From Pavona decussata (taxonomy: Eukaryota): a stretch of 64,000 nt of DNA. The notes below the pieces were generated by a model that was not told the origin of the DNA, made no database searches, and saw only the letters and a program-made list of their open reading frames with translations. The number at the start of each line of letters is the position of its first letter. The stretch's first letter is position 1. Positions 1 to 19,403 of the stretch are shown piece by piece. The position numbers were made by a program, and so were the translations under genes. The DNA lies in assembly GCA_977016875.1 (NCBI GenBank), contig CDRNST010000219.1, positions 434,001-498,000 of the forward strand, written 5' to 3'.

Positions 1-1500
1 TAGTTTCCAGTTCTTTTTCCGACACATGCAGCAGTCCAAATAACTGAATACACAAAAAGAAATAAACAAAAGCTTATAAAGAGGAAGATGGCGGGGACAC
101 CGGTTGGGGAACTGTGGGAAATAAGGTTGACGGGCTCATAACTTTCCCTTTTTTTCACCGTTTAACAATAACAACATACACTTCAGTTTGCGCGCCCCTT
201 GCCATTCAGTAAGCCCAGACGTGATTATGTGCAAGGCCTTGTCAGCCTTGTGACATGCAGGAGTTGATACATCTCAGCTTTCTGTGTCCTGTCAGGGACT
301 GTAGGTAAAAACAAGAGTCAACAGAGTTTGCACTAGTAGCGTTCTACTGAACATCATGTTCTGGAAATACGTTCACTATCGGGGAAAACGGTTTTGTTAT
401 TTGAGTGCAGAATAGTCATTATGTGATGATCCAGGGCGCATAAGAATCTGTGACGGGCATTTCTTGCTCGACCTGGTAACCATGGATGCTTTCAGTAAGA
501 GCCGGTCTTTGAAATCTCAGTTGAAGTGTGACGTAGGCGGGGAGCCGCGGAAGAGTTGAATTTTTTCTGGTAAATGACGGTGGATCTTCATAGCCCGTCC
601 TTTTCACTAGGTGTTAAATGAACTTTTCGTATGCATCAGCAGAAGCTTAGAGCCTGACCATAATCGGTTTATTTTAACTTTATCATCTGTTTCGTCTGCT
701 CTCTTAAAGGTACGATTTGTAGATCAATCATTCCTTGATCTTTGGTTAGTGACTGAAATGCCAGGCCACTGTGTCAGTAAGCACAGGGAACTTTCGCCTC
801 AACTTTCAAATTTTTGCCATTTTTATGAGGGGCATTGCGCTGAAACTAAACCTGCGATTTTGTATTTGTTGCGTTGACATACTTTCTTCCGAACAACTGA
901 AGCAAATTCCTTTTTCAGTCACAACACCACGTCCTCCCAGAAGTTTCCAAAGAACAAATTGCAGAAAGACGAGAAAATTTAGATGTTGCCTATAATTCTG
1001 GCTGATATGAACCATGAAACAATTTGAATGGATCTCATCCTCCTTTCCTTTTTCAACGTTGCTTTCTCCGACAACAACAACAACAACAAATTTTATTTTA
1101 ATACCACACTGGAATATAGAGGAAATAAATGAGTAAACTATACTTATGCAAGGGAAAATGCCACCTAGAAAATAACTAATAAGCTAGACGTCTAGCTAGG
1201 AGGCATAAGAATAATTACATCAGTGTATGTATAAATGTCAAAAGTAGTCGTAACAGGGAGGAACAAGACAGTACAAAAAATAAAAATAAAACACACACAA
1301 AAGACTTTTAAGTAAAATTGTGAGGAAAAAAAGGAGGAAATGTTGAAAGATTGTTTTCTCCACAAAACATGTTCCATTCTAATAACGGTTACGATAAAAC
1401 AACATTGAGTCAGCATTGAGTGAGAAGAGGGGTGTTTAAAATAATATTTGACCCAGATTGTAGGTATATTAACAGTATGATGGATAAATTTAGCACTCAC

Positions 1501-2427
1501 TTTGTTAACATATTCGATGAGCTTATCCAGATTTTTATACCAAGTGTTGGCATTCTGGTATTGGAAATCTCCACCCATGGTCATCAGGATATGGTTTGTC
1601 TTGTAGTGTGCGGCTTGATCGAATGCTGCTTGCACAAATCTGTCCACTCTATCCTCGACATTGTAATCAAACAGGTTCCGGTCATCTTGTATAGGGGGGT
1701 CCGTACACGACTGATCATAACAAAACCCGCGGGGAGGGAAATATTTGTTGTAAAGTACTCCTACAAAAATGTCGGAATCTTGTCCCAGATTTCTGCTTCC
1801 TCTCCATACTAATTCCATGCTTTGTTGCTCAAGGCGAAGCTTTTTATCAGCGTAATCGATACGACCCAAGAAGAAAGCATCGAATGACATTTGAGAAAAC
1901 ATGGAGGCTTGTTCATTGGAATGCCCGAACGGATCAATATGCCAGGCTATTCGTGGCCTAGCATCGGGACCGAATGTTTCTTCCACAAAGTTCAAACCGT
2001 AAGTCATCTGATCAATAATCGCGTTGTAATGTGTGGCGGCTTCATCGTTCATGCACCAACCTGCGTTTATAAACTCCAATCTTTTGCCTCTAACAAGTTC
2101 CTTCACCTTCGCTTGTGTAGCGTTGCTTTGTTCGTTCCACCATCGCTCGAAGAACGCGATTTCCACGTAAATGAAGCGCTTTTTAGGATCTGCAACTAAC
2201 TGGGGGATGACAGAATCTAAAATATACTGGACTCCAGCTCTAGCATTTGGGATGGAATTATTAGCGCCATAATAATATTCATCGACTGTTTTCAACCAGC
2301 CCACGTCGTCATGTGTGTGCGGAACAAGATGGACCTGCAGTTTATCTTCATCCAATCTCGACGAATCTCTATGTTCAAAACCAAAGCCAAGGCAAACCAA
2401 GGCTAACAACAAAAGGAAAGTGGACAT
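1501..2427 (-). CDS. MAN2B1: Lysosomal alpha-mannosidase (GH38) first exon, copy A: signal peptide + N-terminal catalytic domain
   Basis: ATG at 2427; hydrophobic leader; motifs HTHDDVGW (Zn ligands), WHIDPFGHS (nucleophile Asp), MTMGGDFQY (acid/base Asp). Homology ends at ...IEYVNK, followed by donor GTGAGT at 1500-1495. 927 nt, phase 0. The ORF-track tail to 1192 is intron read-through. Confidence 0.9.
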
Positions 2428-2585
2428 TATCGGGCAGTATTATCGAGGCTGCATTCCTTGTGTTACTTTCAGTTATAGTAAGCACACAGTCATGCTTTGG
2501 TCACGAGATAAAACTGTCATATCACAGCAATTTTTTTCTATGAATCGAATTTCAAATCACAGTGTATTTCTCAAAATCTTCCTTT

Positions 2586-2587
2586 TT

Positions 2588-2631
<44 letters not shown>
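2586..2631. repeat. (CTTT)n microsatellite
   Basis: Direct reading of the sequence. Confidence 0.9.
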
Positions 2632-3365
2632 ATAATAATAATAATAAAAATGATCGTTTATTCAACCTTTTTGCAGTATAAACTGAATTACAAGGCGGGT
2701 CATTAATTACGTACAAATATATCGGACACATAAATATAACTGTTAATGTTAATACATATCACATTTCGCTATTTTAAACAAGATTCTGGTATTTTATGGT
2801 GCAAAAATTTCCAAATCTGTTAGTTCTTGCGGAGGCAGCCACAAAAACAGATTCTCCTGTTCTAAGGGCATACGGTCTTGTGTTCGCAACTCTCGGCACT
2901 AAGCTTCGTAGCAGGTCGGAAGAGGGGTAACTTGGCTTGAGAAATGTTATACACGCATCCTCCCTCCTCTGGCACAGCAAGATTAAGCCTGACTTCTTAA
3001 GCGCGTCCTCATAGCACAGAGAAGGAAAGATAATTTTTAGCGCTCTCTTTTGTATTGACTCAATTTGATCACTTAAGTATTGCGTGAGGCCAGCCCAAGC
3101 GGGACTCGCATACTCGAAAACAGACCTGATGATACTACAATAGACAAGAACAAGTTGCCTATCAGTTAGTCCGCATTTCTTAAGGGCGCGTATTGCATAC
3201 AGCCGATTGTGAAGTTATCGGACAGGTGAACCGCTAACAGCTTGTAACAGGAAACCTTTTCCATCAGAGAGCTTCCAACCAGTAGAGGGGCTGGGGGAAA
3301 CGGGCAATACTGCAAAAAGCTAATGCACATTTCCTTGCATTTTTTACCGTTAAGAACCATTCCCC
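2630..3365 (-). mobile_element. 5'-truncated non-LTR retrotransposon (L2/CR1-group LINE) 3' end
   Basis: Broken frames encode ...KCKEMCISF...YKLLAVHLSDN / RLYAIRALKKCG...YCSIIRSVFEYASPAW...IESIQKRAL (post-RT region); (ATT)n tail near 2632-2646. Confidence 0.85.
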
Positions 3366-4360
3366 TAGAGGAAGCAAACGAGTAAATATCCGAAACAGTA
3401 AAATTCTTTTTTTCTTTCTTCCTTTCTTTCTTTCTTTCCTTCTTTTAAAACTCGACATGACAGAATATTTCGAAACAGATTGATACGGAAGCGTGATTTT
3501 TCAAGTTCAAGAAGAGCATTTTGATCTTTTTTCTCAATCGTGCAGTTAAAATCTTTCAGTCATCGACCGCCTTTTTCAAAGTTGCCTCGTTGCTATCCAG
3601 TCACGTGAACTCATTTCTAGGCTGCAATCGTTTAATTTTTTGTTTTAGTTTTGAATTACCGTGGCACATGCTGTCCAAACTTGATAACCGTCCTTCCTGG
3701 CTGTTACAGTTTTGATTAAAGTTCGATCTGCTCTAGACTTTACCGGCCCGCATTCGCATATTGAAAGCCGCGCCCACGCACACTAGGAGTAAAGATCAAT
3801 TTCGAAAATGGTCGAAGCCTGTGAAGGCGAGTAAACTTCATTGGAAATCCATAAAAAATTAAAGAGGGAGGTCTGAAGACGGCCTGCAATTTGTTGAAAA
3901 TTTTTTTTCGAATCAGAGCAAGGTATGAATTTCCCATCGTGACAAGAAAAAGACGTGTGGAGATCAATCTCTCCAGTTTCCTCGCGTTTATTTTTGCGTT
4001 TAAATCCCGCACTATCTTAAGGTGGCTGGCGCAATATGGCTCAGGTTTCCTGTGGCGTTTTCAGAGCTCCAGAGCCGATTTCCGAATTTCGGATGCGCGG
4101 GAAATGGGGCAAGAGCAAAACAAAGACATCTTTGTTTTGCTCTCGCCCCACTTCCCACGCAACCAAACTTCGGAGAACGCTGAAAACCCAACTGAAACAC
4201 TTGCTACGCAGACTAATTACTTTTCAGCTCTTATACTTTGTCGGACATGTCGGATCATTACTATTATTCTTTATCAGTTGATAATACAAATGATAATAGT
4301 TTCAAACAAATGCCTAAACATTGGCGAACAAGTTATGCAGTGTTTAAAACACGAGCAGCA

Positions 4361-4423
4361 GTGTTTTATCGGGATTTAAAACCACTCGGCTGCGCCTCGT
4401 GGTTTTAAATCCCAATAAAACAC
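4361..4423. repeat. Palindromic core of a non-autonomous DNA element
   Basis: GTGTTTTATCGGGATTTAAAACCAC...GTGGTTTTAAATCCCAATAAAACAC inverted repeat; the same motif recurs at ~4565-4605. Confidence 0.6.
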
Positions 4424-4886
4424 GTGCTGTGAGTTTTTTGAACGGCTTCAAAAACATTCCTGGAAAAGCGTGTGTCAAGAGCGTTCACAACAATGATGCT
4501 TTTATGAACGTTGGAAATTAGCATTCGAGAAAAACATCAAACACCGCATACTAATAAGGAGGAGGTTTTATCGGGTTTTAAAAACACTGACGTGATGTTT
4601 TATCGACCATTTGATAGGTCAATGGGCTTATGAATTATTAATGAGTTTTGAAGTTGTTTTCTCGACATCAAATTGGGGGTGTTTGTTATCGAAGTGGTTA
4701 TAACTAAAAAGCGAGCTCGGTTACCCTCATCTTTTATTATACATATAGAACTCCAATCAGCTTGTTTAGATACAACTTTTCACAAAGTTAAAACAATTCT
4801 GGGGAAGGGTTTCAGAGCCACCTTAAATTTTAAGGCAAGGCTTTTAACAATCTGGCACCTTCGTACAATCGTAATTTACTGATACC

Positions 4887-5600
4887 ATGCACTCCATCTC
4901 GTCAGCTACGCTCAAAATTACAAGGGACCACCACCAGTTCCTACACCTGAAGAACTTGTCGGAATATTTTTCAAATGTGTTGACCAGCCACCTACACGAG
5001 GGTTCGACCCTTCTGTACATCAAAGGCCTCACAGGACTGCTAACGAGGTTGCTCAAAAAACAGGGCATACAAGTTACCAATAAACCTCTCTAAACAAACT
5101 CGAACAAGAATCCCCGGCTCCCAAATTTCGTCCTGTAAAAGTACATCAATGTAGCGTCGTCTACAAAATTCCCTGCACCACATGTTCGTGGAGCTACATT
5201 GGTGAAGCGAGAGGGTCGTTTAGCACCAGGAAAAAAGAACATGCTGGAAACATGAAAATATGCGCCAAAGGTACTAATTTTGCTAACCACGCTTGGTCCA
5301 AAAGCCACCAGATTGCCAAATGCCTCATTCATTGACAAGTCCAATTATCGCCACCTTAAGACCCTTGAGTCCTGGCATACTGCGAAAACTGTTGACGCTG
5401 ACAATAACTCATGTCCACTCCCTAATCAATTCCTTATTCTTCTTAATAAATAATGTTTTTTACAGTTATCACTTCTATTGTACATTTTTTGTATTCATTA
5501 GTCCTCATTTCATATTCTCTTTATATTTTATCCGTTGAAGACAGCAGGATGGTTATCGACAGCATATACCTTTTCAATTTTTTAACCAGAGAACGTTTTA
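4887..5600 (+). mobile_element. Penelope-like element fragment: GIY-YIG endonuclease and 3' end, degenerate
   Basis: Frameshifted translation ...YIKGLTGLLTRLLKKQGI... then VVYKIPCTTCSWSYIGEARGSFSTRKKEH...ANHAW...LESWHT, a PLE-type GIY-YIG domain. Confidence 0.85.
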
Positions 5601-6629
5601 AACTTTTAACCATCTTTCTTACGAATAACTATTGTTGGGCCGTTTATTCTCATACGATTTACAGTGTAGTACAGACTGAAGTACAGTCTTTAGACAGTGC
5701 TTATTTTTAGCATGGGTAGTACGATCTAGCTGGCAAATGGAAGGCTTTTAAAATTCCTTTAAAAGATTGGACGTTTCTGATATCACGGCTAAAGCTGTTC
5801 CATAGTAAGGTCCAAAGTAGCGAAGCGAACCAGACGTAACTGGCAGCGCAATGAACCAATCAGAACTCGAAGGAAATACAAATAACTGGCGCCAAACGCG
5901 GGGAAGCACCTGCGAGCAAATCACGATTGGTCTTGCTTTTGCTTCTCATTGGTTGAGAAATTGGCGCGAGTTTTGCTGACACACTCGACTAAAGCGCGCG
6001 AGAGAAACCTCTGGTCTCCATAGTAATAAGTTCGTTAAAAAGAAGAAAGAACAGTACTTAATTAAACCTTATTTTTACGGTAACAAAATTATCTAATACA
6101 CAGAAAATGAATTTTCTTTGAAACTTTGATCAACACGTGCGTGACTGAAATCAATTTGCTTCACTGACCGGTGTCTTGTGGCATGTCACGCCTCTTGAAT
6201 CTATTTATAGAACAAGTTCTCATCCTTTTTGGCTACTTCTGACGGAAGCAGTTCATATTGTATCCTTCCTTTGCTGAAAACAAATGACACACCGCGGTCG
6301 CGTGCCAAGAGGAAATGCTAGAAGTAAGAAATAGAAAATATATTTTGTTTGAAAATATAGCTTTGGAGTCTTTTAAAAGACCTTTGTGTAAGCTAAAATG
6401 GTTTCCCTCGAGCCGTTTGTTTAAGTGAATTTCCCAGGTTTCTTTGACACATTAACCGATGTTAATTAAGTTTTCATGTTAAAAAAATACCGGAAGATTG
6501 AGGACTGAAATTTCCGTGTAAAAGTTAGCAGAATTTATAAAATAAAATTGGTCGTTAACAAAAAGGCATTTTCTCCTGTTGAGGTGAATGTACGTTTTTC
6601 TGCGGGGAAACACATCTTGGCTCCGGCAC

Positions 6630-6847
6630 ATGACAGAATCTAACACATACTGGACACCAGCATGTTGGATGGAATTATTAGCCCAATAATAATATTCATC
6701 CACTGTTTTCAACCAGCCCACGTCGTCATGTGTGTGCGGAACAAGGTGGACCTGTAGTTTATCCTCGTTCTTCACTGATCCGTCAAACTTACAATCGAAG
6801 GCGGAAACTAAACCAAAAATCGTCACAAAAAAGACCACAGCTAACAT
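6630..6847 (-). pseudogene. 5' fragment of a third, divergent alpha-mannosidase first exon (MLAVVFF... leader), cut by a duplication breakpoint
   Basis: Different signal peptide, then [43 protein letters not shown]. Homology stops abruptly at ~6630, where the sequence switches to the copy of 13852-14805. Conserved Gly is replaced by Trp. Confidence 0.8.
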
Positions 6848-8566
6848 TTCCTACAGTTAAAGTAACACGAATCCGTGTTCGGTGAGCTCATTTACATCTC
6901 TGAGAAAGTCATACTTGAATCACAAGATCACGAGGTATTTTTTTATTTTTGTAAATTCCAAATGAAAGAGCCTGGCACTACTAGTTTCCAGTTCTTTTTC
7001 CGACACATGCAGCAGTCGAAAAACCTGAATACACAAAAAGAAATAAATAAAAGCTTATAAAGAGGAAGATGGCGGGGACACGGGTTGGGGAACTGTGGGA
7101 AATAAGGTTGACGGGCTCATAACTTTCCCTTTTTTTTTTCACTGTTTAACAATAACAACATACACTTCAGTTTGCGCGCCCCTTGTCATTCAGTAAGCTA
7201 GCCCAGACGTGATTATGTGCAAGGCCTTGTCAGCCTTGTGATATGCAGGAGTTGATACATCTCAGCTTTCTGTGTCCTGTCAGAAACTGTAACTTAAACC
7301 AAGAGTCAACAGAGTTTGCACTAGTAGCGTTCTACTGAACATCATGTTCTGCGGAAAATACGTTCACGATCGGGGAAAACGGTTTTGTTATTCTTGAGTG
7401 CAGAATAGTCATGTGATGATCCAGGGCGCATAAAAATCTATGACAGGCATTTCTTGCTCGACCTGGTAACCATGGATGCTGTCAGTAAGGGATGGAAGCT
7501 GGTCTTTGAAATCTCAGTCGAAGTGTGACGTAGGCGAGGAACCGGGGAGGAGTTGATTTTTTTCTGGTAATTGACGGTGGATCTTCATAGCCCGTCCTTT
7601 TCACTAGGTGTTGAATGAACTTTTCGTATGCATCAGCAGAAGCTTAGAGCCTGACCATAATCGGTTTATTTTAACTTTGTCATTTGTTCCGTCGGCTCTG
7701 TTAAAGGAACGATTTGTTGATCAATTACTCCTTGATCTTTGGCTAGTGGCTGAATTTCCAGGTCACTGTGTCAGTAAGCACAGGGAACTTTCGCCTCAAC
7801 TTTCAAATTTTTGCGATTTTTATGAGGGGCATCGCTGAAACTAAACCTGCCAATTTGAAGTATTTGTGACGTTGATATACTTTCTTCCAAAAAACTATTG
7901 TGTGTCGTCTATAATGTATTTATGTTGTATTTTTTGGTTAATGACAAAATAAACGAATTTAATTTAATTTAATTGAAAAAAACTGAAGCAATTACTTCCT
8001 TTTTCAGTCACAACACCACGTCCTCCCCGAACTTTCCAAAGAACAAACTGCAGAAAGACGAGAAAATTTGATGTTGCCTATAATCCTGCACATAAACCTT
8101 GAAACAGTTTGAACGGATCTCATCCTCCTTCCCCTTTTCAACGTTGCTTTCTCCAACAACAAATTTTATTTTAACTACCACACTGAAATATAGAGGAAAT
8201 AAATGAGTAAACTCTACTTATGTAGGGTATAATGCCACCTAGAAATTAACTAATAAGCTAGTCTAGCTAAGAGGCATAACAATAATTACGTTGTATGTAT
8301 AAATGTCAAAAGTAGTCGTAACAGGGAGGCACAAGTACAAAAAATAAAACACACACAAAAGATTTTAAGTAAAATTGTGAGGAAAAAGGAGGACCTGTTA
8401 AAAGAATGTTGTCTCCACAAAACATGTTCCATTCCAACAACGGTTACGATAAAACAACATTGAGTCACCATTGAGTGGAGAGAGGGGTGTATAAAAAAAA
8501 TATTTGATCCGGATTGTAGGTATACAGAGGTATATTAACAGTATGATGGATAAATTTAGCACTCAC

Positions 8567-9487
8567 TTTGTTAACATATTCGATGAGCTTATCCAGATTT
8601 TTATACCAAGTGTTGGCATTCTCGTATTGGAAATCTTCACCCATGGTCATCAGCATATGGTTTGTCTTGTAATGTGCGGCTTGATCGAATGCTGCTTGCA
8701 CAAATCTGTCCACTCTTTCTTCGACATTGTAATCAAACAGGTTCCGGTCATCTTGTATAGGGGGGTCCGTACACGACTGATCATAACAAAACCCGAGGGG
8801 AGGGGCATAGTTATTGTAAAGTACTCCCGCAAAAATGTCGGAATCTTGTCCCAGATTTCTGCTTCCTCTCCATACTAATTCCATCCTTTGCTGCTCAAGG
8901 CGAAGCTTTTTATCAGCGTAATCGATACGACCCAAGAAGAAGCCATCGAATGACATTTGAGAAAACATGGAGGCTTGTTCATTGGAGTGTCCAAATGGAT
9001 CAATATGCCAAGCTATTCGTGGCCTAGCATCGGGACCGAATGTTTCTTCCACAAAGTTCAAACCGTAAGTCATCTGATCAATAATCGCGTTGTAATGTGT
9101 GGCGGCTTCATCGTTCATACACCAACCTGCGTTTATAAACTCCAATCTTTTCTCGCTAACAAGTTCCTTCACCTTCGCTTGCGTAGGTTCGCTTTGTTCG
9201 TTCCACCATCGCTCGAAGAACGCGATTTCCACGTAAATAAAGCGCTTTTTGGGATCTGCAACTAACTGGGGGATGACAGAATCTAAAATGTACTGGACTC
9301 CAGCATGCTGGATGGAATTATTAGCTCCATAATAATATTCATCCACTGTTTTCAACCAGCCCACGTCGTCATGTGTGTGCGGAACAAGGTGGACCTGCAG
9401 TTTATCTTCATCCAATCTCGACGAATCTCTGTGTTCAAAACCAAAGCCAAGGCAAACCAAGGCTAACAACAAGAGGAAAGTAGACAT
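8567..9487 (-). CDS. MAN2B1: Lysosomal alpha-mannosidase (GH38) first exon, copy B
   Basis: ATG at 9487; same motifs as copy A (HTHDD, IDPFGH, MGEDFQY); ends ...YVNK|GTGAGT at 8566; 921 nt, phase 0; about 95% aa identity to copy A by eye. Confidence 0.9.
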
Positions 9488-9591
9488 TATGGCAGTATTA
9501 TCGAGGCTGCATTCCTTGTGTTACTGCTATGGTAAGCACACGGTCTAGCTTTGGTCACGAGATAAAACTGTCATGTCATGGCAATTTTTTC

Positions 9592-9704
9592 TACGAACCG
9601 CATCACGAAGTCACGCAGTCCATCACAAGCAAAAGGCTTAACTGCATCACGCAGTCACATTAATTGCTTGCGATGAGCTGCGTGACTGCGTGATGCGGTT
9701 CGTA
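9592..9704. mobile_element. Short MITE with TA ends
   Basis: TACGAACCGCATCACG...CGTGATGCGGTTCGTA terminal inverted repeats; present upstream of copy B only. Confidence 0.75.
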
Positions 9705-10285
9705 ATGCACTTATTATTGGCTTTCCCGGGGGTTGACCCCCGGGACACCCCCGGGAAACCCTCGGGAACATGCGGGGAATTGTACATTTTTGACAATATT
9801 TTGGGCCCGTGGGGTGGAGACATTGTTTAGTTTTGGAAACAAACGCTTCAGACCCCAGGGATGCACCCCCGGGATTTGGTCATCATTGGTCAGCGGTACA
9901 TGGCATGTTAAAATGGGGTTGACAGAGCTGCGCGATTCCCACTGTGTGTCCGTTGTGTTGATCATGAAAGCCTTTTCAGTTTTGCTTTTACAAGTATGTC
10001 TTTCAGCGATTTTCCTTTTGTATAAGAGATTCTTCCTTAGATCAAAATGTGATGCGACTGCTCTGCGTCCTCTGCTTCATGGTGTTTGTCTTGATCATGA
10101 GGGGGAATTCTCAAATATACTGAATGGAGGGTTTCTTACTGATCATTCTGAGCCATAAGGATTAGTTTTTGATATGCCATTGTGTATGCTAGCTCTGTGG
10201 CATTTGTTAAGGCTTATCGGCTTGGATTGACTGCAAGATTGCAGGTAGCACTAAATAAATGTTATCTGTGAAGATACAGGATCAG

Positions 10286-10435
10286 TAGCCTGCGTAGCAG
10301 TTTTTTCCGTTTCGTTCAAGCCAAGCGGGGTAAGCGCGCGAGGGCATACTACTTTTTTGCTCCTTTTCCCCCAATGCCCTCGCGCGCTTACCCCGCTTGG
10401 CTTGAAGGAAACGGAAACGACTGCTACGCAGGCTA
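10286..10435. mobile_element. Palindromic MITE with TAG...CTA ends and 9-bp TSD (Academ/AcademH-like)
   Basis: TAGCCTGCGTAGCAG...CTGCTACGCAGGCTA; TSD CAGGATCAG at 10277-10285 and 10436-10444. Confidence 0.85.
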
Positions 10436-10636
10436 CAGGATCAGTGGATTTCTTAACTCGTGAATTCATGCTTATGCTATTGGTTCATATCTCTATTGTA
10501 TCTCTATTGTATCTCGCTCGAAGGAAACGGAAACGACTGCTACGCAGGCTGCAGGATCAGTGGATTTCTTAACTCGTGAATTTATGCTTATGCTATTGGT
10601 TCATATCTCTATTGTATCTCGCTGCGGGAAGATTGC

Positions 10637-10761
10637 TAGCCTCCCACGCAAACGTCCTTAGGGGTTCAATTCGTCACGCGTTTCCTTCACCGCGAACGGA
10701 AGGAAACGCGTGGGGAAGGAAACGCGTGACGAACCCCTAAGGACGTCTGCGTGGGAGGCTA
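10637..10761. mobile_element. Palindromic MITE with TAG...CTA ends and 9-bp TSD (Academ/AcademH-like)
   Basis: TAGCCTCCCACGCA...TGCGTGGGAGGCTA; TSD GAAGATTGC at 10628-10636 and 10762-10770. Confidence 0.85.
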
Positions 10762-11205
10762 GAAGATTGCAGGAATTTTTTTAATCACGGATATGAGTGT
10801 CTAACAGATCCTCGTCTTTACAAAGCTCGCTTCGGAGAGCTATAATGCTATAGCTTGTTGCGCTGTCTTTTAGTTCTCTGAGTTGCTTTTTATCTGAAAA
10901 ACAGCTATTGTGTTCTTAGAGCTGACATGTACCTCCATTATTTTGTGGCTTAGCTTGCATCTGCAGCAGATATTTAAAGCTAAGACATGTCTTGTGAGTC
11001 TCTAGGATGCTAGCGAAAAATGAAGGTATTCGGGCTCCTAAGCCCCTGGAGAGGGGGATTTGGCGTGACTCTTATGCCCAATTCCCCGGGGATTTAGAAG
11101 GTTTTTGTTTGATCGTTAAAACAAATCCTCGGGAAAGCCAATGATAAGTGCATTAAGTCCAACCCACAAATGACCCTTGCTCGCCAACGAGTCCTCAGTA
11201 GCTCA

Positions 11206-11565
11206 GTAAAAACCAGTGATAAACTGCGTTTGCAAGGACCACCGTGACAAAATAAAAGTACCGGATCCTGTAGTGAAGGATCTAATCAGCAAAAAAAATT
11301 GTAAAGCAAATAATCTAAAAAAAGAGCAAGGCTGATTTCACGGTCAGGGGAGTATATTTTCCAATATTTCGAAAGGCACGGCCTTTCTTCTTCAGGGTTT
11401 GTTTGAGACTGACCCTGTGGCAAGATACGTTACAATTTTTAACAGTTACAATAGATACCTAAAAAAAAAGACTAAAGTTACATAAACAAAAACGTTTTTC
11501 GAAATATTGGAAAATATACTTCCCTGACCGTGAAATCAGCCTTGCTCTTTTTTTAGATTATTTGC
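11206..11565 (-). mobile_element. Penelope-derived fragment with 69-bp inverted arms and a hammerhead motif, inserted into a tRNA-derived repeat
   Basis: Arms 11306-11374 and 11497-11565; near-perfect direct repeat CCTCAGT(A/G)GCTCA at 11193 and 11565; hammerhead core at 11361-11397 (-). Confidence 0.65.
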
Positions 11566-11690
11566 CTCAGTGGCTCAAAGGTTAGAGCATCCGATCTAGA
11601 ACACGGAGGGTCGTGGGTTCAAATCCCATCTGGGGCTCAGATTTTTTCTGTGTCCTCTTATGGTCGATTCTTTACATCTCCCTTTATTGC
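11566..11690 (+). mobile_element. tRNA-derived SINE/repeat head
   Basis: A-box-like TGGCTCAAAGGTTAGAGC and B-box GGGTTCAAATCCC (11615-11627); 5' end interrupted by the insertion above. Confidence 0.65.
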
Positions 11691-12294
11691 CGGCTTTCAG
11701 TGTCACGCCATTGCCGTGTGCGTGAAAAAAATATTGCAACCATTCCATGAATGAAGTCAAGAAATTGACATGTTATAGATGATATGTAAATAAGAAACCT
11801 GTCCAAGTGTCAGGTCTGTGCGGTATTCCATACTTGAATTATTTGACAAAATGTTTCACACAATTTTTTTAGAGCTCAGTATGGAGACGCCATGTTGGTG
11901 TTCCTCTGAGGAACACGAACATGGCGGCCGGAAATAGGAAAAAAGATCTGGGGTTCACTTTTGCCAGAAAAGAGGTTTGTTTTCCCTTGTGAATTTCCGA
12001 ATGTTAAGATAAATATTTCTCCTCAAACTTAAATTGTTTAGAATGCTGAAAATCACTCGAAGAGGCATTTTTTTAAAAGATACGGAACAGCCCTGTCACG
12101 GCCGTCCTCTTGATGTCACGCACGATGAAAACTCGGAAATTGAAACTCTTCTATTTTCAAAAGGAAGTACGACATCGAGCTAAGAAATTGTGAAAAGACA
12201 TATTTTTAGGTAATCTTTCCCTGGATGAAGGGAAAAATTTTGTAGGCCTCCCGGTTTTGAATTCTAGAATTTGGTGACGTCATGTGAAAACCGA
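11690..12294. mobile_element. MITE-like non-autonomous DNA element
   Basis: Imperfect TIRs CGGCTTTCAGTGTCACGCCA / TGACGTCATGTGAAAACCG; internal GCCATGTT...AACATGGC palindrome. Confidence 0.55.
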
Positions 12295-12316
12295 GAATTT
12301 CCTTTATAATACTAAC

Positions 12317-12446
12317 NNNNNNNNNNNNNNNNNNNNNNNNNNNNNNNNNNNNNNNNNNNNNNNNNNNNNNNNNNNNNNNNNNNNNNNNNNNNNNNNNNNN
12401 NNNNNNNNNNNNNNNNNNNNNNNNNNNNNNNNNNNNNNNNNNNNNN
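12317..12446. other. Assembly gap
   Basis: Run of N. Confidence 1.
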
Positions 12447-12479
12447 ATAACTTTTCAGTTTACAATTTGTTCTAAAACC

Positions 12480-12770
12480 TTCTGTGGACAGTGTCTAGGC
12501 AACAGTTCCTGGATTGGGAAAAAAATGTGTGTTTCATTGTCTTAATCTGTAGGATTTTTTGGTGATGTCGCAGTTCTGTGATATAATCCACTTCTGACAG
12601 TTTGTTAGTACTTTAGTGATATCTTTCTTGTGGGCTAGATCAGAGAGTTCTTTCTTTAGGGTGATGTTGAAATCTCCCAGAAGGTTAAACACCGCATTGG
12701 TTTGCTTGATCTCGTACTCAGGATAGAGTTTTCGGAGACCCAGTCTTAGATTTAGGTACTTTTCGACCTG
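12480..12770 (-). mobile_element. Probable 3' fragment of a non-LTR retroelement with a restriction-like endonuclease
   Basis: EKYLNLRLGLRKLYPEYEIKQTNAVFNLLG resembles the KY..L...L...Y...LG C-terminus of RLE domains. Confidence 0.45.
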
Positions 12771-12771
12771 A

Positions 12772-13673
12772 TTGATCACAACGTTTCAGTTGATACAGAA
12801 ATTCCTTCGACTAGATATCCCCCGCTGTATTGTGAACTGGGTAGCTGACTTTTTGACCAACAGACAACAGCGCGTTAAACTCTCTAAACAATGTTTCTCA
12901 GAATGGGGTCAAGTTCCAGCAGGTGTACCTCAGGGGACTAAGCTTGGGCCATGGCTCTTCTTACTCATGATTAACGACCTCAGCATTCCTGACTTTCTCA
13001 CTTGGAAATACGTTGACGACACCACTGTTGCGGAAATAGTTCCACGCGGCGCATCTAGTGAGATCCAAAAAGCGGCCGATAAAATAGTGGATTGGTCCAA
13101 GGATCAACGTATGCATCTTAATGAGGACAAATGCAAGGAAATAAGAATTCACTTTAAAAAGAACAAACACAGCCTCGATCCAGTTTCTATTGATGGCAAA
13201 GATCTGTCCGTGGTTGAGAACGCAAAGATCCTCGGCGTCAACATCTCCAACGATCTTAAGTGGAATGACCACGTAGAGCAAGCTATTAAAAAGGCCAACA
13301 AGAGACTGTATCTCCTGGTCCAACTGAGAAGGGCTGGTGTTGGGGCCAAAAGTCTAATAAAATTTTACTGCACGGTTATACGACCTGTTCTGGAGTATGG
13401 CGCCCAAGTGTTCCATCACAACCTTCAAGATTACCTCTGTGAAGACCTTGAGAGGGTTCAGACTAACGGGCTTTGTCCATAATTGCGCCTGATCTCCCAT
13501 ACCAGCTCTGGCTAGATTGTTTTGAATTGGAGAGCTTAAGAGTCCGACGTGAAAGGCTGTGTTGCAAACTAATCAATGAGATATTTGATGAACAACACAA
13601 TCTCCACAGCCTTCTGCCCACAAGACATCATTCATCATACAATCTCAGGCGACAAAGAACTTTTAGCCTGCCA
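12772..13673 (+). mobile_element. LINE (L2/CR1-group) reverse transcriptase fragment, frameshifted
   Basis: FLTNRQQRV, GVPQGTKLGPWLF, YVDD, LGVNISNDLKW, RPVLEYG motifs; frameshift near 13465; runs into an N gap. Confidence 0.92.
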
Positions 13674-13809
13674 NNNNNNNNNNNNNNNNNNNNNNNNNNN
13701 NNNNNNNNNNNNNNNNNNNNNNNNNNNNNNNNNNNNNNNNNNNNNNNNNNNNNNNNNNNNNNNNNNNNNNNNNNNNNNNNNNNNNNNNNNNNNNNNNNNN
13801 NNNNNNNNN
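13674..13809. other. Assembly gap
   Basis: Run of N. Confidence 1.
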
Positions 13810-15796
13810 GTGTGTGCGCAAATTTTTATTGATATGAATAACTATTTATTGTCATACAATTTACAGTGTAGTGCAGACTGAAGTACAGTGTTTATTTTTA
13901 GCATGGGTAATAAGATCTAGCTGGCAAATGGAAGGCTTTAATTCCGTTAAAAGATTGAACGTTTCTGATGTCACGGCTAAAGCTGTTCCATAGTAAGGTG
14001 CAAAGTAGCGAAGTGAACCGAACGTAACTGGCAGCGCAATGAACCAATCAGAACTCGAAGGAAATACAAATAACTGGCGCCAAACGCGGGGAAGCACCTG
14101 CGAGCAAATCACGATTGGTTTTGCTTTTGCTTCTCATTGGTTGAGAAATTGGCGCGAGTTTTGCTGTCCCACTCGACTAAAGCGCGCGAGAGAAACCTCT
14201 GGTCTGGTGGTAAAAAGATGAAAGAACAGTGCTTTATTAAACCTTATTTTTACGGTAACAAAATTTCAAATTCACAGAAAATGAAATTTCTTTGCAAATT
14301 TGATCAACATGTGCGTGACTGAAATCAAATTGCTTCAGTGACCGGTCAGTCTTGAGGCATCTCACGCCTCTTGAATCTATTTATAGAACAAGTTCTAATG
14401 CTTTTTGGCCTCTTCTGACGGAAGCAGTTGATATTATATCCTTTCTTTGTTGAAAACAAGTGACACACCGGAGTCGCGTGCCAACGAGGAAATGTTAGAA
14501 GTAAGAAATAGAAATACATTTTGTTTGAAAATATAGCTTTGGAGGCTTTTAAAAGACCTTTGTGTAAGCTAACATGGTTTCCCTCGGGCCGTCTGTTTAA
14601 GTGAATTTCTCAGGTTTCTTTGACACGTTAACCGATGTTAATAAATTTTAATGTTACAAAAATACCGGACGATTGAGGACTGAAATTTCCGTGTAAAAGT
14701 CAGCAAAATTTATAAACTAAAATTAGTCGTTAACAAAAAGGCATTTTCTCCTGTTGAAGTGACTGTACGTTTTTCTGAGGGGAAACACATCTTGGTTCCG
14801 GCACAGGAAATGTAAAAGGATTGTTCCTGGTTTCCTTTTGTTGCTAAGCACTTCCGACACATGCCTAATATTGCATTTGTATTCAGTTCCTTAAATATTC
14901 TGTTGCCATGCAGTATGAGATAGCACCGCTCATACAGGAACAAGAACTGAATTAAAAAAACAAAACCGCTTACTCCTAGATATTCAATTTGCCTTGTGGT
15001 GTTTGCCTTTTACGATCCGGATGCCTATCATATGCCCTTTCTTTGGTTACTTCATCATTCAGCTTCTTTCAAATTTTTGTTTACAAATTAAAGTTCATTA
15101 AAGTTTAATTCATCTAACGACAGTCACTTGAAAAAATGTGTTTGCAAATGGAATCGCTACTGAAATAATAATGAGAAAAAGAAGGTGTTTTTTCCGGAAG
15201 TAAAAAACCGATCAAACTAGTCACTGTTATTCTTTTAATAAAACGTAATGGGCTATATATAGGTCAAATTCATTTCTTCCTATGCGTGAGATAAATTAGC
15301 ATTACAATTAAATGTCAAAACATGAAGAACAATTAATGGTCACGCGCTTTTACCAATAGGAACAGGACGAATTTTAACGGAACTAAAAATTTTTCAGCAA
15401 ACCGAGACTTCCTTTAAACTATTAATGAATTTTCTTGTTTCCAAATCGCTCTCAAGTTTTCTCAAAATCGTTCTTAGTTGTTGAAAATCAAACCGTGTTT
15501 CGATCGCGTTTGTTACAATGCCCAAACCACTTTATTACGTAGAGTTAAATAGTGTTTTTTCATGCTCGAATAAGCCGTTTCCGTTAATGAATATTTTTCA
15601 CGATCCAGTGGGCACAGTATAAACATGTTTTTAACGCGTGTTTTAAGTTCTCAATTTATTCAATTCTAGCAAAGCCGATCATTAAAAAGAGCCAACTCCC
15701 ACGGCATCAGAACAACCGCATATTTCAGAAGTGAGAACATCCACGTAAAATGGTTAACTATTCTGGGCCACAAGGTTGGGTAAGAAACAAGCTGGT

Positions 15797-15803
15797 TATA
15801 AAA
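15797..15803 (+). promoter_or_regulatory. TATA box candidate for FGF-A
   Basis: TATAAAA about 100 nt upstream of the ATG at 15901. Confidence 0.5.
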
Positions 15804-15900
15804 GGGAACAGCTCTGCAGTGTTGATGGCAAAGCAAATAACCAGCACAAAAGAAAAACATCTCTTGAATCACAGAACTTCTGCTACAACTATCAGTCAAG

Positions 15901-15915
15901 ATGAAGTTACAACTG
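15901..15915 (+). CDS. FGF-A coding exon 1 (MKLQL)
   Basis: ATG...CTG|GTAAGT, phase 0; joined to 16248 it completes the signal peptide MKLQLSLLFPVLLTLGVCHS. Confidence 0.75.
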
Positions 15916-16247
15916 GTAAGTTAGTTGTTATTTATTTATTGTAGATTTTCAAGCTGTTGTTGCTACAATCTGATTATTGGCAATTGAAAGTTGAGCTGGG
16001 AATCCGCAGTTACATTCTGTGAACTTACTAAGCTATTTTCACGTGTTTAAAGCAGCAATTTATAATTCGGTAGGTGCATAGTTGCAGTAAACTGAGCTGG
16101 TGTTCAAACTCGTGCATTTTTTTGTGAAGGAAAATAAGAGAGTTTGCTCTCTGCTGCATCAAATAATTTGTCCGAGTGGAAGAATTGAATTGAGGGATAG
16201 GTTCCACAACTAAATATCAATCTGACTATCTGATTTTCTCTCTGCAG

Positions 16248-16542
16248 AGCTTACTTTTCCCAGTTCTTTTGACTTTGGGCGTTTGTCACTCAGCTGTACT
16301 CAAGGAGAATTCCCAGAATTCACTTGCGTCAACCGATCCTATTGTGGTCTGGAGACTCAAAAATCTGTTCTCAAATCGCCAGCGACGCTCTCATTTCACA
16401 GTAAACTCGCAGATAAGCAGCATCGCGTCAAAAAAGCCGTCCTTTGAAATTGATGTACGTCTTTTCGGCAAGACGCAGATGTTTCTTCAGATCGCTGCTG
16501 ACGGCACAGTCAACGGAACCTCGGACTGCACAAGTGCATACG
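16248..16542 (+). CDS. FGF-A coding exon 2
   Basis: Acceptor TTTTCTCTCTGCAG; encodes ...RQRR...VRLFGKTQMFLQIAADGTVNGT; donor G|GTAAG, phase 1. Confidence 0.9.
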
Positions 16543-17242
16543 GTAAGAGACATTTTCAACCATGCACTTCTTTCAGCATAACCTAGTGGCCAGAGAAATC
16601 AGAAAAACTATCTGATCCGTAAAGTTGGCTTGCAGTCCAATTAAGAAATAGACTAATCAAGAAAATTAAGATGCCTTGCAAAGTTGCCCTAGTCTGGGCC
16701 AGCGCGCGTTTTTCACTCATCAGTTGCCTAAAAGTTTTTAACAAAATCGACAAGAAAATTGATCTCTCTAGTATAATTAGCCAGCGCGGACAAGAGATCA
16801 TGACCGGGGAATTTTTCGGAAGACAACCCGGGTCCAGCCAGTGAGAATTGATCCTCCTCTGGCCATGTGATTTACTCGAGATCAACACAGGGAAATTCTC
16901 GGATCTAGTTTTTCCTTTTAGCTGTTTCAATATTTCAGGAAGTTAATGTTAGTACTTATTCTTGTTTTAATTCTATGGGCGAATCTCATTAGCCACCATT
17001 ATCTAGTCATACACGAATCACGAGGAACGAGAAAAACTCGCGATCTTAATACAGCAGGGAAATCGGCTGCAAAAATAACCTTGAAATTGTGGAGGTTTGT
17101 TGTGCGACCACACGTAAGAATCAACACGACATTTTTGCCAAAATTCTGGAGTTTTCTGACTAGAGTTGGCGAATTTTACCTTGTCATGTGAGGTAACATG
17201 GTCATCAATTATTAACGCTCTTTAACTTCCTTCATATTTTAG

Positions 17243-17346
17243 CCAAACTGCGGTTGCAATCGATGGCGATTGGTCACCAACGTATAAAGGCGACAGAAAC
17301 CGGCCGCTATGTAGCGATGGACAACAAAGGCAATCTGTATTCTACG
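17243..17346 (+). CDS. FGF-A coding exon 3 (104 nt)
   Basis: AKLRLQSMAIGHQRIKATETGRYVAMDNKGNLYST; AG/GT bounded; canonical FGF middle-exon length. Confidence 0.93.
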
Positions 17347-17816
17347 GTAAGATGAATTCTCTTTGAAGCAATCTTGCCTTGTCCAAGTTCGACTGACAAG
17401 CCATGCATGTAGTGCGTTGTTCCAAATAATTGGAAACGTTTTAAGATATTAATTTAATAAGTGAATTAGAAAAATTAATCAGAGTCCGCCCTAAAAACGT
17501 TTTATCGTTTTTGTTTGACGAATTCGATTAAAACACTTCGAAACTGAAATGCCATCAAAATTAAGGGATTTTGCCTTTTTCGTGCACCATCCATCCAATT
17601 AGGGTAATTTTCGGCGTGTTTGGTGCACGTGTCCACAAGACCCTCGCGTTGCCCACATCGTGGCATAATTCGCCATCTCTAACGTTTTAACGGTCAAAAA
17701 GATCTGTCCAAATAAAGATCAGTTTGGAAGGTCAAAATCTTCCATTTATATATTCAGTGAGTCCGCTGGCATTGTAACAACAATAACTTAATGAATATCA
17801 TTCTTTATTTTTCCAG

Positions 17817-18020
17817 ACTTCTCCCAACGACGAAACCATCTTCAAGCAAACAATGCAGAGCGACTCGTTCCACACCTTTGCGTCAGCGAAATACTACAGA
17901 AGAACAATATACGATTCTTTTATATCAATTGGTCGAAATGGTAAGGCAAGGAGTGGAGCAGGGACCAACAGCAGCCAGAATAAAGTCAAGTTTTTAATTT
18001 TCACGGCGGACAGTTGTTAG
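17817..18020 (+). CDS. FGF-A last coding exon (protein 205 aa)
   Basis: TSPNDETIFKQTMQSDSFHTFASAKYYRRTIYDSFISIGRNGKARSG...KVKFLIFTADSC*; acceptor TTTTTCCAG. Confidence 0.9.
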   Translation, partial: TSPNDETIFKQTMQSDSFHTFASAKYYRRTIYDSFISIGRNGKARSGAGTNSSQNKVKFLIFTADSC

Positions 18021-19403
18021 CAAATGCCAGTACCCAATGACATAGGACTTAGTAGGTAGATTTTATGAAGGAATTTTAAATTATGCTTAGTCACCGTAAA
18101 ACAAGCTGTACAACTGATAAAGTTGCTGAATAATTTTCAAGTATTTTTGGCGTGATTCAAGTGAGATAATTTCATCGGTTTTCTAAATTTCCCAGAAAGT
18201 GCTAGCGTCGACTGGCGTTCCCTTTCTCTCTGAAAAAACAAATCGAATTTTGATTAGCTAAGAAAAGGGAAAACCATTATGAAGATAGAAAAACGGTAAA
18301 AGCAATTGTGTCGCATTTGAAGGGAGCTTCCCGCCCTACGAATTTTATTAAGAATCTTCATTATTCCAGCCCCATGAAATGGGAGGCAAATTAGAGAGTT
18401 TTCCTTGGATTGCAAGGTGTGTGTGAATTACCGTAGTAGAGTAGATATATTTTTAAAAGCCAAGCGTCAAAAATTCTTGAATAATTTTGCGTGCCCCACT
18501 CTAATAAATTAAGTACAAAGTGTGTTTAAAATTGAGCCGGCTAAAAGGTTTTTAATTTATAACGTCTACTTTTCATAGTAAATGTTTATAATTAATTAAG
18601 CTGTTTCGAAAATGGCTTATGTCGTATGCTTTACACGTAAAGTACGATAAATTCCAGTTCCTTATATTTAAGGATAAATGTTATTGATATATATCAATAT
18701 TTATTTTGGAATGAAAAGAAGAAGTTTATTTAATAGGAATACGGTTGAAATTAGACACTGTGTGTGAATAATTCAGCGCAACTAGTATCATATTTATTCA
18801 TAATTTAAGCTTGAGTGCCTGAAATGAAATAAAAAAACAGTTGAAAAAGAAGAATAGTGTTAGATTGTTAGTACTGTAAACCAGGGTTCGGTTGCAAGCA
18901 CCGATACAATTTTCTGGGGTGGGGTGGGGTGGAGAAAAGGGGGAGACATATCAAAAAAAATATGGCCTCGAAACGATTTGAAAAAAAAAAAGAACACACA
19001 CACAGACGTTAAAAAGATTACCAGCCAAAAAAAACTATTAATTAAATGCGAAACAGTAGCCAACTTTTCTTTCCTATTTTCTCCGTTTGAGAAAGAACAA
19101 GCGAATTGTAGCGGACAAGCAGACGAGTAGCTGGGGAGAAGTGGGCCTGTTCGGATAGAGCCAACGTCCTCCTCCGTATGTAGTGGAAGATTTACCATTC
19201 ACGAAATGTCGACAGAAACACGTGGTCTATTCTCGGTTCTCTCTCACCGGTTCTAACCGTTTCTGGTCATGTACACGTCATGTACGCGATCCTAAAAGTG
19301 TCCTACTACTCTTACCCACAAACGTTATTAAACACACATATACTTACAAGGTCCTTCTAATAGGTGATTAAAGAAGCAGAGACCGATACAACGTAGAATT
19401 ACG

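Follow-up and report, generated by a model that had tools for sequence, protein, structure and literature searches.

The locus considered here lies on contig CDRNST010000219.1 (C219) of the Pavona decussata assembly GCA_977016875.1. The window, that is, the whole stretch of 64,000 nt that was analysed, corresponds to C219:434001-498000, and negative window coordinates refer to positions to the left of it. The locus holds what is very probably a gene for a lysosomal-type GH38 alpha-mannosidase with multiple variable first exons. The gene is on the minus strand, and the order along it is exon B, relic C, exon A and exon P, followed by the constant exons 2-4:

8567..9487 (C219:442567-443487), minus strand: first exon B, 921 nt, 307 codons, distal type, leader MSTFLLLL
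8561..8566, minus strand: splice donor of exon B, phase-0 GTGAGT, recognised by sequence context only
6630..6847, minus strand: relic C, duplicating the initial 217 nt of exon P, leader MLAVV
1501..2427 (C219:435501-436427), minus strand: first exon A, 927 nt, 309 codons, distal type, leader MSTFLLLL
1495..1500, minus strand: splice donor of exon A, phase-0 GTGAGT, used in RNA contigs
1..1494, minus strand: start of the 4.96-kb intron of A-type transcripts, which spans exon P leftward to the exon-2 acceptor at C219:430545
C219:432950-433873 (window -1050 to -127), minus strand: first exon P, 924 nt, proximal type, leader MLAVV, donor GTAAGT
C219:430348-430545, minus strand: exon 2, homologue residues 308-374 (tblastn), left of the window
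approximately C219:428700-428933, minus strand: exon 3, homologue residues ~355-432 (tblastn), left of the window
within a 575-codon open reading frame at C219:423154-424881, minus strand: exon 4, homologue residues 429-987 (tblastn)

Two minus-strand open reading frames (ORFs) in the window, 8465-9487 and 1192-2427, contain exons B and A, respectively. The lengths of both exons are multiples of three, each exon is followed by GTGAGT, and both code for a hydrophobic leader, the HTHDD zinc motif and the IDPFGH nucleophile motif. Exon B, for example, runs from its ATG through a signal peptide into a GH38 N-domain with zinc ligands, the nucleophile Asp and the acid/base Asp. Pfam searches, done exon by exon, detected Glyco_hydro_38N (PF01074) with E-values of 3.8e-76 on exon B and 2.3e-74 on exon A. 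The first-pass annotation, made from the letters of the window, had described two intact exons of 921 and 927 nt with a leader, a GH38 region and a phase-0 GTGAGT donor; the ORFs, the Pfam matches and the sequence context all agree with this description. Exons A and B share 95.4% identity and are separated by a single indel, of 6 nt, that keeps the frame; exon A has a derived 2-residue insertion. Exons B, A and P, spaced 2.5-7 kb apart on the same strand, show 78-95% protein identity.

The constant part of the gene was located by tblastn of the complete 990-aa homologue from the coral Montipora foliosa against C219:394-498 kb. Residues 12-308 of the homologue matched exons B and A, residues 1-308 matched exon P and residues 1-89 only matched relic C, while residues 308-987 matched once, at C219:430548-423178. 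Exons 2, 3 and 4 were not found anywhere in the 64-kb window by this search, as had been claimed earlier for exon 2 down to position 1; the DNA to the left, where further first exons and a single constant set had been expected, contains exon P and one set of exons 2-4. Whole-genome family searches gave, for contig C219, four N-domain matches, one middle-domain set and one C-terminal domain, with PF07748/PF09261 present on the contig as a single set. The domain set, comprising Glyco_hydro_38N, Alpha-mann_mid, Glyco_hydro_38C and Laman-like domains, is that of a lysosomal-type GH38 enzyme: PF01074 in exon 1, PF09261 in exons 2-3, and PF07748, PF21260 and PF17677 in the last exon. Exon 2 reads DGRVHAFYSTP..., in frame with B, A and P, and exon 1 aligns to chain A (peptide a) of bovine lysosomal mannosidase 1O7D over residues 24-306 (E 1e-125). 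The gene thus has four exons, with three intact first exons and one constant region. The product may be lysosomal, a signal peptide-like leader being the only visible sign of its location. Two more GH38 loci in the genome (C123:4.063-4.074 Mb and C334:3.280-3.293 Mb) have many small exons and are unrelated to the array.

For evidence of splicing, Logan contigs of four runs (three samples, four studies) were aligned to the segment C219:430301-436300 (L022), which contains exon 2, exon P and 800 nt of exon A. The P donor was joined to exon 2 in all four runs (L022 245 joined to 2650, 2404 nt skipped, CT..AC ends). For the A donor, a joint to exon 2 was seen in X1 and X6, two runs of different studies (L022 245 joined to 5201, i.e. 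window 1501, with 4955 nt skipped). Both joints have the CT..AC ends of GT..AG introns on the minus strand, and both use the same exon-2 acceptor. The intron stretches had zero contig depth and, because of this and of the intron-less GT..AG joints, the runs are taken to hold cDNA. The X1 junction contig was A-like at 10 of the 15 sites diagnostic of A versus B and had four further letters in common with the A copy of a close relative; therefore, we assigned it to an allele of A. Within 110 nt of its donor, exon B can be told apart by the letters C, T, C and A at window 8623, 8637, 8654 and 8672. Contigs over exon P extended 147 nt upstream of its ATG, and no joints entering A or P from upstream were found in the RNA contigs on L022. 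A contig of run X7 with two B-like letters was considered as a B transcript and rejected, since it lacks the 10-nt insertion and other intron indels of B; it is an allele of A. In the intron between exon 2 and P, at L022 401-1400 (C219:430701-431700), all four runs showed contig depth in the thousands, with many short contigs, internal joints and loose ends, and this stretch looks like an expressed multi-copy repeat family.

Isoform pairs of the same design were found in RefSeq. The X1 and X2 isoforms of Stylophora pistillata differ at 57 positions and those of Oculina patagonica at 65 positions; in both species, all differences are confined to the first 310-314 residues, after which the isoforms are identical, and each pair has one A/B-like and one P-like leader. 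Tandem pairs of first exons are present in three other coral assemblies, and in one of them (L027) exons 2-4 follow right after the proximal one, so that the comparison of first-exon and downstream-exon copies in other corals, proposed earlier as a check, yielded tandem first exons in three assemblies and a single constant set in one. In a fourth coral assembly (L025), the whole gene is repeated in tandem and every copy has a last exon of its own; in L028 a retroelement with integrase and reverse-transcriptase ORFs (14365-18350) lies between the two first exons of that coral.

In maximum likelihood trees, the coral distal exons made up one clade (support 76-87 by ultrafast bootstrap and 96-99 by the Shimodaira-Hasegawa-like approximate likelihood ratio test), in which exons A and B were sister to the Montipora distal exon (97-99/95-96). 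Forcing A, B and P of the Pavona genome into one clade was rejected by the approximately unbiased test (p 0.00025). Hydractinia, used as an outgroup, fell inside the distal clade on a branch of 0.89; it was dropped and the tree was rebuilt. The representatives retrieved by an exhaustive search with exon A were all at ≤65% identity. Judged from these comparisons, the distal and proximal types predate the scleractinian radiation, and the A/B pair arose later, via a ~7-kb tandem duplication.

The distal clade also takes in two RefSeq 'genes', a 340-aa one of Montipora capricornis (P0305) and a 328-aa one of Pocillopora damicornis (P0333). In both, a distal first exon is continued past its donor into the intron, and their annotation as separate genes is probably wrong. 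If it were right, distal first exons could make stand-alone truncated proteins of 330-410 aa by read-through of the donor. These two models, which end shortly past the donor, fit such an explanation, as do the ORF of exon A, which runs 102 codons beyond its donor, and the X7 contig that crosses the donor into the intron. However, the tails that A and B would gain by read-through diverge from each other and lack conservation between species, and the proteins would be left without the middle and C-terminal domains encoded by the constant exons. Moreover, spliced junctions were observed, and models of Pocillopora verrucosa and Stylophora hold the distal exon type in full-length proteins. We therefore consider the truncated proteins a very improbable explanation of the distal exons.

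The origin of exons A and B is seen in the self-alignment of the locus, which involves the following further features:

6630..9603: upstream duplicate segment, containing relic C, the former P promoter region, and exon B with 116 nt upstream
13845..14808: distant end of the upstream unit of the duplication, 90.3% identical to 5643-6633
12772..13482, plus strand: reverse-transcriptase fragment (Pfam RVT_1, E 1.3e-9), inside 9603-13845

In the blastn self-alignment, window -344..2550 matched 6630..9603 at 90.7-92.3%, with many indels in the flanks; the part -344..898 matched 6630..7896 at 92.3%. Compared with these flanks, the exons are 95.4% identical, which bears out the earlier observation that both ORFs and donors stayed intact while the surrounding DNA gained indels. 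The alignment is read as a tandem duplication with units of ~7 and ~8.2 kb and a breakpoint 217 nt into exon P, and it is because the breakpoint cuts exon P at this point that relic C exists; through the duplication, B is a copy of A. Past the breakpoint near 6630, the ORF of relic C enters unrelated sequence and reaches a stop at 6479. Since relic C matches only homologue residues 1-89, resembles the GH38 family over no more than its first ~80 residues and is cut at the breakpoint, we take it to be a truncated leftover of the duplication that is not usable as a first exon. The first-pass annotation had placed a third first exon with a MLAVV leader here: the start at 6847 is real, but it belongs to the relic, and the third intact exon is P, left of the window.

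Between their matching ends, the two units had no shared sequence in the self-alignment; 2550-5643 and 9603-13845 are different insertions, 3.1 and 4.2 kb long. Nothing upstream of A corresponds to the 4.2-kb stretch in front of B, and therefore the upstream surroundings of the two copies differ beyond ~120 nt. Within this stretch, at 10285-10436 and 11306-11565, we observed inverted self-complementary matches (152 and 260-275 nt, 73-80% identity) that may be hairpin-forming repeat elements. Exon P aligns with A and B inside the exon only, at 85-87% nucleotide identity; therefore, the duplication that separated P from A/B must be much older.

The high identity of the exons (95.4%) would also be expected if the A/B duplication were an artefact of assembly or of haplotypes, a possibility raised by the first-pass annotation itself. 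Nevertheless, the flanks are ~9% different, with many indels and with the unlike insertions of 3.1 and 4.2 kb, and the order B, C, A, P is repeated in an independent assembly of a close relative (L029, ENA ERZ25073805 contig, dS 0.05 to the Pavona genome). The chance of such an artefact is, in our view, negligible.

We determined the rates of nonsynonymous and synonymous substitution (dN and dS) for the exon copies. Exons A and B have 42 nucleotide and 16 amino-acid differences, with dN/dS of 0.18-0.25 at dS of 0.10-0.14. When the changes were polarised with other exons, the A lineage had 11 synonymous and 14 nonsynonymous changes (omega ~0.4), and the B lineage 8 synonymous and 5 nonsynonymous ones (omega ~0.2). 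Between species, dN/dS was 0.05-0.11 for distal exons, at dS of 0.7-1.7, and 0.06-0.11 for proximal exons. Within a genome, the dS between the distal and the proximal exon was 0.13-0.24 in the 5' half of the exon and at least 0.9 in the 3' half in four out of five genomes, the exception being L026 with low dS in both halves. In L028 (ENA ERZ25067868 contig), the distal exon is chimeric, with a 5' half like that of its own proximal exon and a 3' half with the distal signature. Such a pattern indicates that gene conversion homogenises the 5' half, while the 3' half usually stays distinct.

Several observations weigh against the reading of the locus as a gene with alternative first exons. No RNA contig in the four runs could be assigned to exon B; hence, of the junctions from both donors to the same acceptor that had been anticipated, the one from 1501 (A) was found, as was that of P, but none for B. 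Logan contigs cannot reveal transcript starts; over exon A, they covered only the donor-proximal 376-550 nt, and its ATG region was empty in all four runs. None of the runs is on record as RNA, their 'RNA' status being the guess of a tool, and the X7 contig reads through the A donor into the intron. Exon A has changed at otherwise invariant positions (QH to PNARA, YENAN to YQNAN), and these changes, together with a dN/dS of ~0.4, could reflect relaxation rather than a new function. In the close relative L029, whose A and P copies are intact, the HTHDD motif is disrupted in the counterpart of exon B (3661-4567), which also has indels, including a deletion of 16 nt, and three stops in frame; exon B may thus be dispensable, being a pseudo-exon in at least one close lineage. 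An assembly error as the cause of this damage was rejected, since two of the three stops stem from base substitutions and, in the same contig, A and P are clean.

From such observations one could argue that A and B are dead partial duplicates of P, the real first exon, and that the junctions from A to exon 2 are noise from leaky transcription. The pseudo-exon in the close relative and the substitutions in A would fit, as would the A junction, which was found in only two of the four runs at a contig depth below that of the P junction, although contig depth cannot rank isoforms. On the other hand, distal exons are intact in every coral examined and have a fixed residue signature common to nine of them. 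Their dN/dS between species, 0.05-0.11 at dS of 0.7-1.7, is impossible for unconstrained DNA, and that between A and B is also below 0.5. In two other genera, RefSeq models join distal exons to constant exons. We find it hard to credit, therefore, that A and B are both dead.

We put the probability that the locus is a multiple-variable-first-exon gene for a lysosomal-type GH38 alpha-mannosidase at about 0.85. Each intact first exon would supply the start codon, the signal peptide and the first ~308 residues (approximately 'peptide a'), and the variable part would thus carry two zinc ligands, the nucleophile Asp and the acid/base Asp. Each first exon has a phase-0 GT donor and showed no use of an acceptor; in a transcript that begins there, the donor of that exon would be joined to the common exon-2 acceptor, and any first exons further downstream would leave within the intron. 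Splicing to the common acceptor was observed for A and P and is presumed for B. A separate promoter presumably precedes each first exon, and the choice of promoter would then produce enzymes with the same C-terminal body and different active-site surroundings. The cassettes might differ in specificity or pH profile; a role in the processing of symbiont or food glycans is speculation. The first-pass annotation had proposed at least three catalytic cassettes sharing one constant set left of the window. The layout, the A and P junctions and the RefSeq isoform pairs speak for this proposal, although splicing was not seen for B. The diversified repertoire that it envisaged comes down, in this genome, to three cassettes, a small array of two ancient types rather than a large repertoire.

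Besides the layout, the residues that distinguish the cassettes are of interest. Type-specific residues were found in four motifs, FF[L/F]GRIDY, YN[N/G]Y[A/N]PP, DQ[S/F]C and MG[E/S]DF[Q/M]YENAN[T/L]WY. The exons were aligned to Drosophila Golgi mannosidase II (1HTY; published numbering = index + 30), and the register was checked on D204, F206, R228, Y269 and D341, which fall on conserved columns of this alignment. Equivalents of H90, D92, D204 and D341 are present in A, B and P in the alignments to 1HTY and 1O7D, the distal zinc ligand being encoded by the constant exons. In GH38 enzymes, D204 is the nucleophile and D341 the acid/base (PMC13204073). The variable residues lie two positions ahead of R228, on both sides of Y269, and at D340 beside the acid/base D341. 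They also coincide with the dyad D270/D340 (N262/S318 in the lysosomal mannosidase), a non-conserved pocket exploited for inhibitor selectivity (PMC13204073). The states of this dyad were distributed as follows:

N/S: exon P and nearly all proximal exons
A/E: exon B and all nine distal exons of other species
F/G: exon A and its orthologue in the close relative (L029)
F/G: one proximal exon of another coral (L026)

We see that the three intact Pavona cassettes have three different dyads, and that the differences between cassettes lie mainly in the 3' half, at residues flanking the active-site Arg, Tyr and acid/base Asp.

A larger array was found in two ENA holobiont assemblies of a more distant cnidarian, in which the last exon is 52-58% identical to that of corals. 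Six consecutive first exons lie ~3 kb apart with no constant exon between them; five are complete, each having a Met and a hydrophobic leader, an ORF free of interruptions and a GT donor in phase 0, and the sixth is cut by the contig end. The longer contig has one more first exon ~4.8 kb upstream of a single last exon, which brings the total to at least seven, a lower bound because the 16 kb between the two stretches retrieved (615,965-631,905 of ENA contig ERZ26695794:ctg497423) were unread. The cassettes have 58-81% mutual identity, except for one pair at 96%, and form a clade of their own; therefore, this expansion was separate from the coral one. Their dyads are M/G, M/G, Q/G, A/E, Q/S, N/S and N/S, so that the A/E and G-class states recur in this array. 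In a more distant cnidarian (L032), we observed two complete compact genes of this family lying head to head.

The first exons may serve as catalytic cassettes with distinct functions, the dyad states N/S, A/E and (F, M or Q)/G being kept from gene conversion in corals and promoter choice selecting mannosidases by substrate, inhibitor or pH profile. We offer this tentatively and at slightly less than even odds. If true, the gene would provide, among glycosidases, a counterpart to the detoxification repertoire of UGT1A, with a possible link to digestion or to the handling of symbionts. The part that is swapped holds the whole catalytic dyad and the subsite separating Golgi from lysosomal GH38 enzymes, which makes isoform-specific specificity testable.

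There are also consequences for annotation: in RefSeq, the distal first exons of Montipora capricornis and Pocillopora damicornis stand as truncated 'genes' of their own, and read counting per gene merges isoforms with different active sites.

The variable-plus-constant organisation of Ugt1, Gcnt2 and Ugt2a was reported as vertebrate-specific (PMC1885805). Here, a variable-first-exon organisation known from vertebrates is found in a cnidarian glycoside hydrolase and is conserved across reef-building corals. In the literature searched, no alternative first exons were described for any mannosidase and no variable-first-exon clusters in cnidarians. Within this literature, the layout is new for a glycosidase and for a cnidarian, while RefSeq already models both isoforms in two coral genera without comment.

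Among the known systems, vertebrate GCNT2 (IGnT) likewise has two or three similar tandem first exons that code for an N-terminal targeting segment and most of the catalytic domain; these exons are spliced separately to a short constant set, and lineage-specific tandem duplication alters their number (PMC1885805). However, GCNT2 is a type II membrane glycosyltransferase, while the coral enzyme is a soluble GH38 hydrolase. Set against GCNT2, the coral gene also shows gene conversion that homogenises the 5' half of the exon and leaves the 3' half type-specific.

In UGT1A and UGT2A, as in the coral gene, the variable first exon codes for the substrate-facing N-terminal domain and the constant exons for the rest, and birth-and-death evolution has left pseudo-exons in some species (PMC1885805). 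On the other hand, UGT1A has up to 13 first exons, compared to three intact ones in Pavona and at least seven in the distant cnidarian. The catalytic machinery of the UGT enzymes is also divided otherwise, whereas in corals the nucleophile and the acid/base are both in the variable part.

The clustered protocadherins (alpha, gamma) resemble the coral gene in their large variable first exons spliced to constant exons and in gene conversion among the variable exons, each of which has its own promoter (PMC1885805). Unlike the coral enzyme, protocadherins are adhesion receptors; their promoter choice in neurons is stochastic, which the coral gene is not known to share.

Bovine and human MAN2B1 (1O7D) belong to the same family and have the same domain order as the coral gene, and the P cassette shares the lysosomal N/S dyad. 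In vertebrates, MAN2B1 is divided into about 24 small exons and has only one first exon. In contrast, the coral gene has four exons and several first exons, and its distal cassettes have A/E or F/G dyads.

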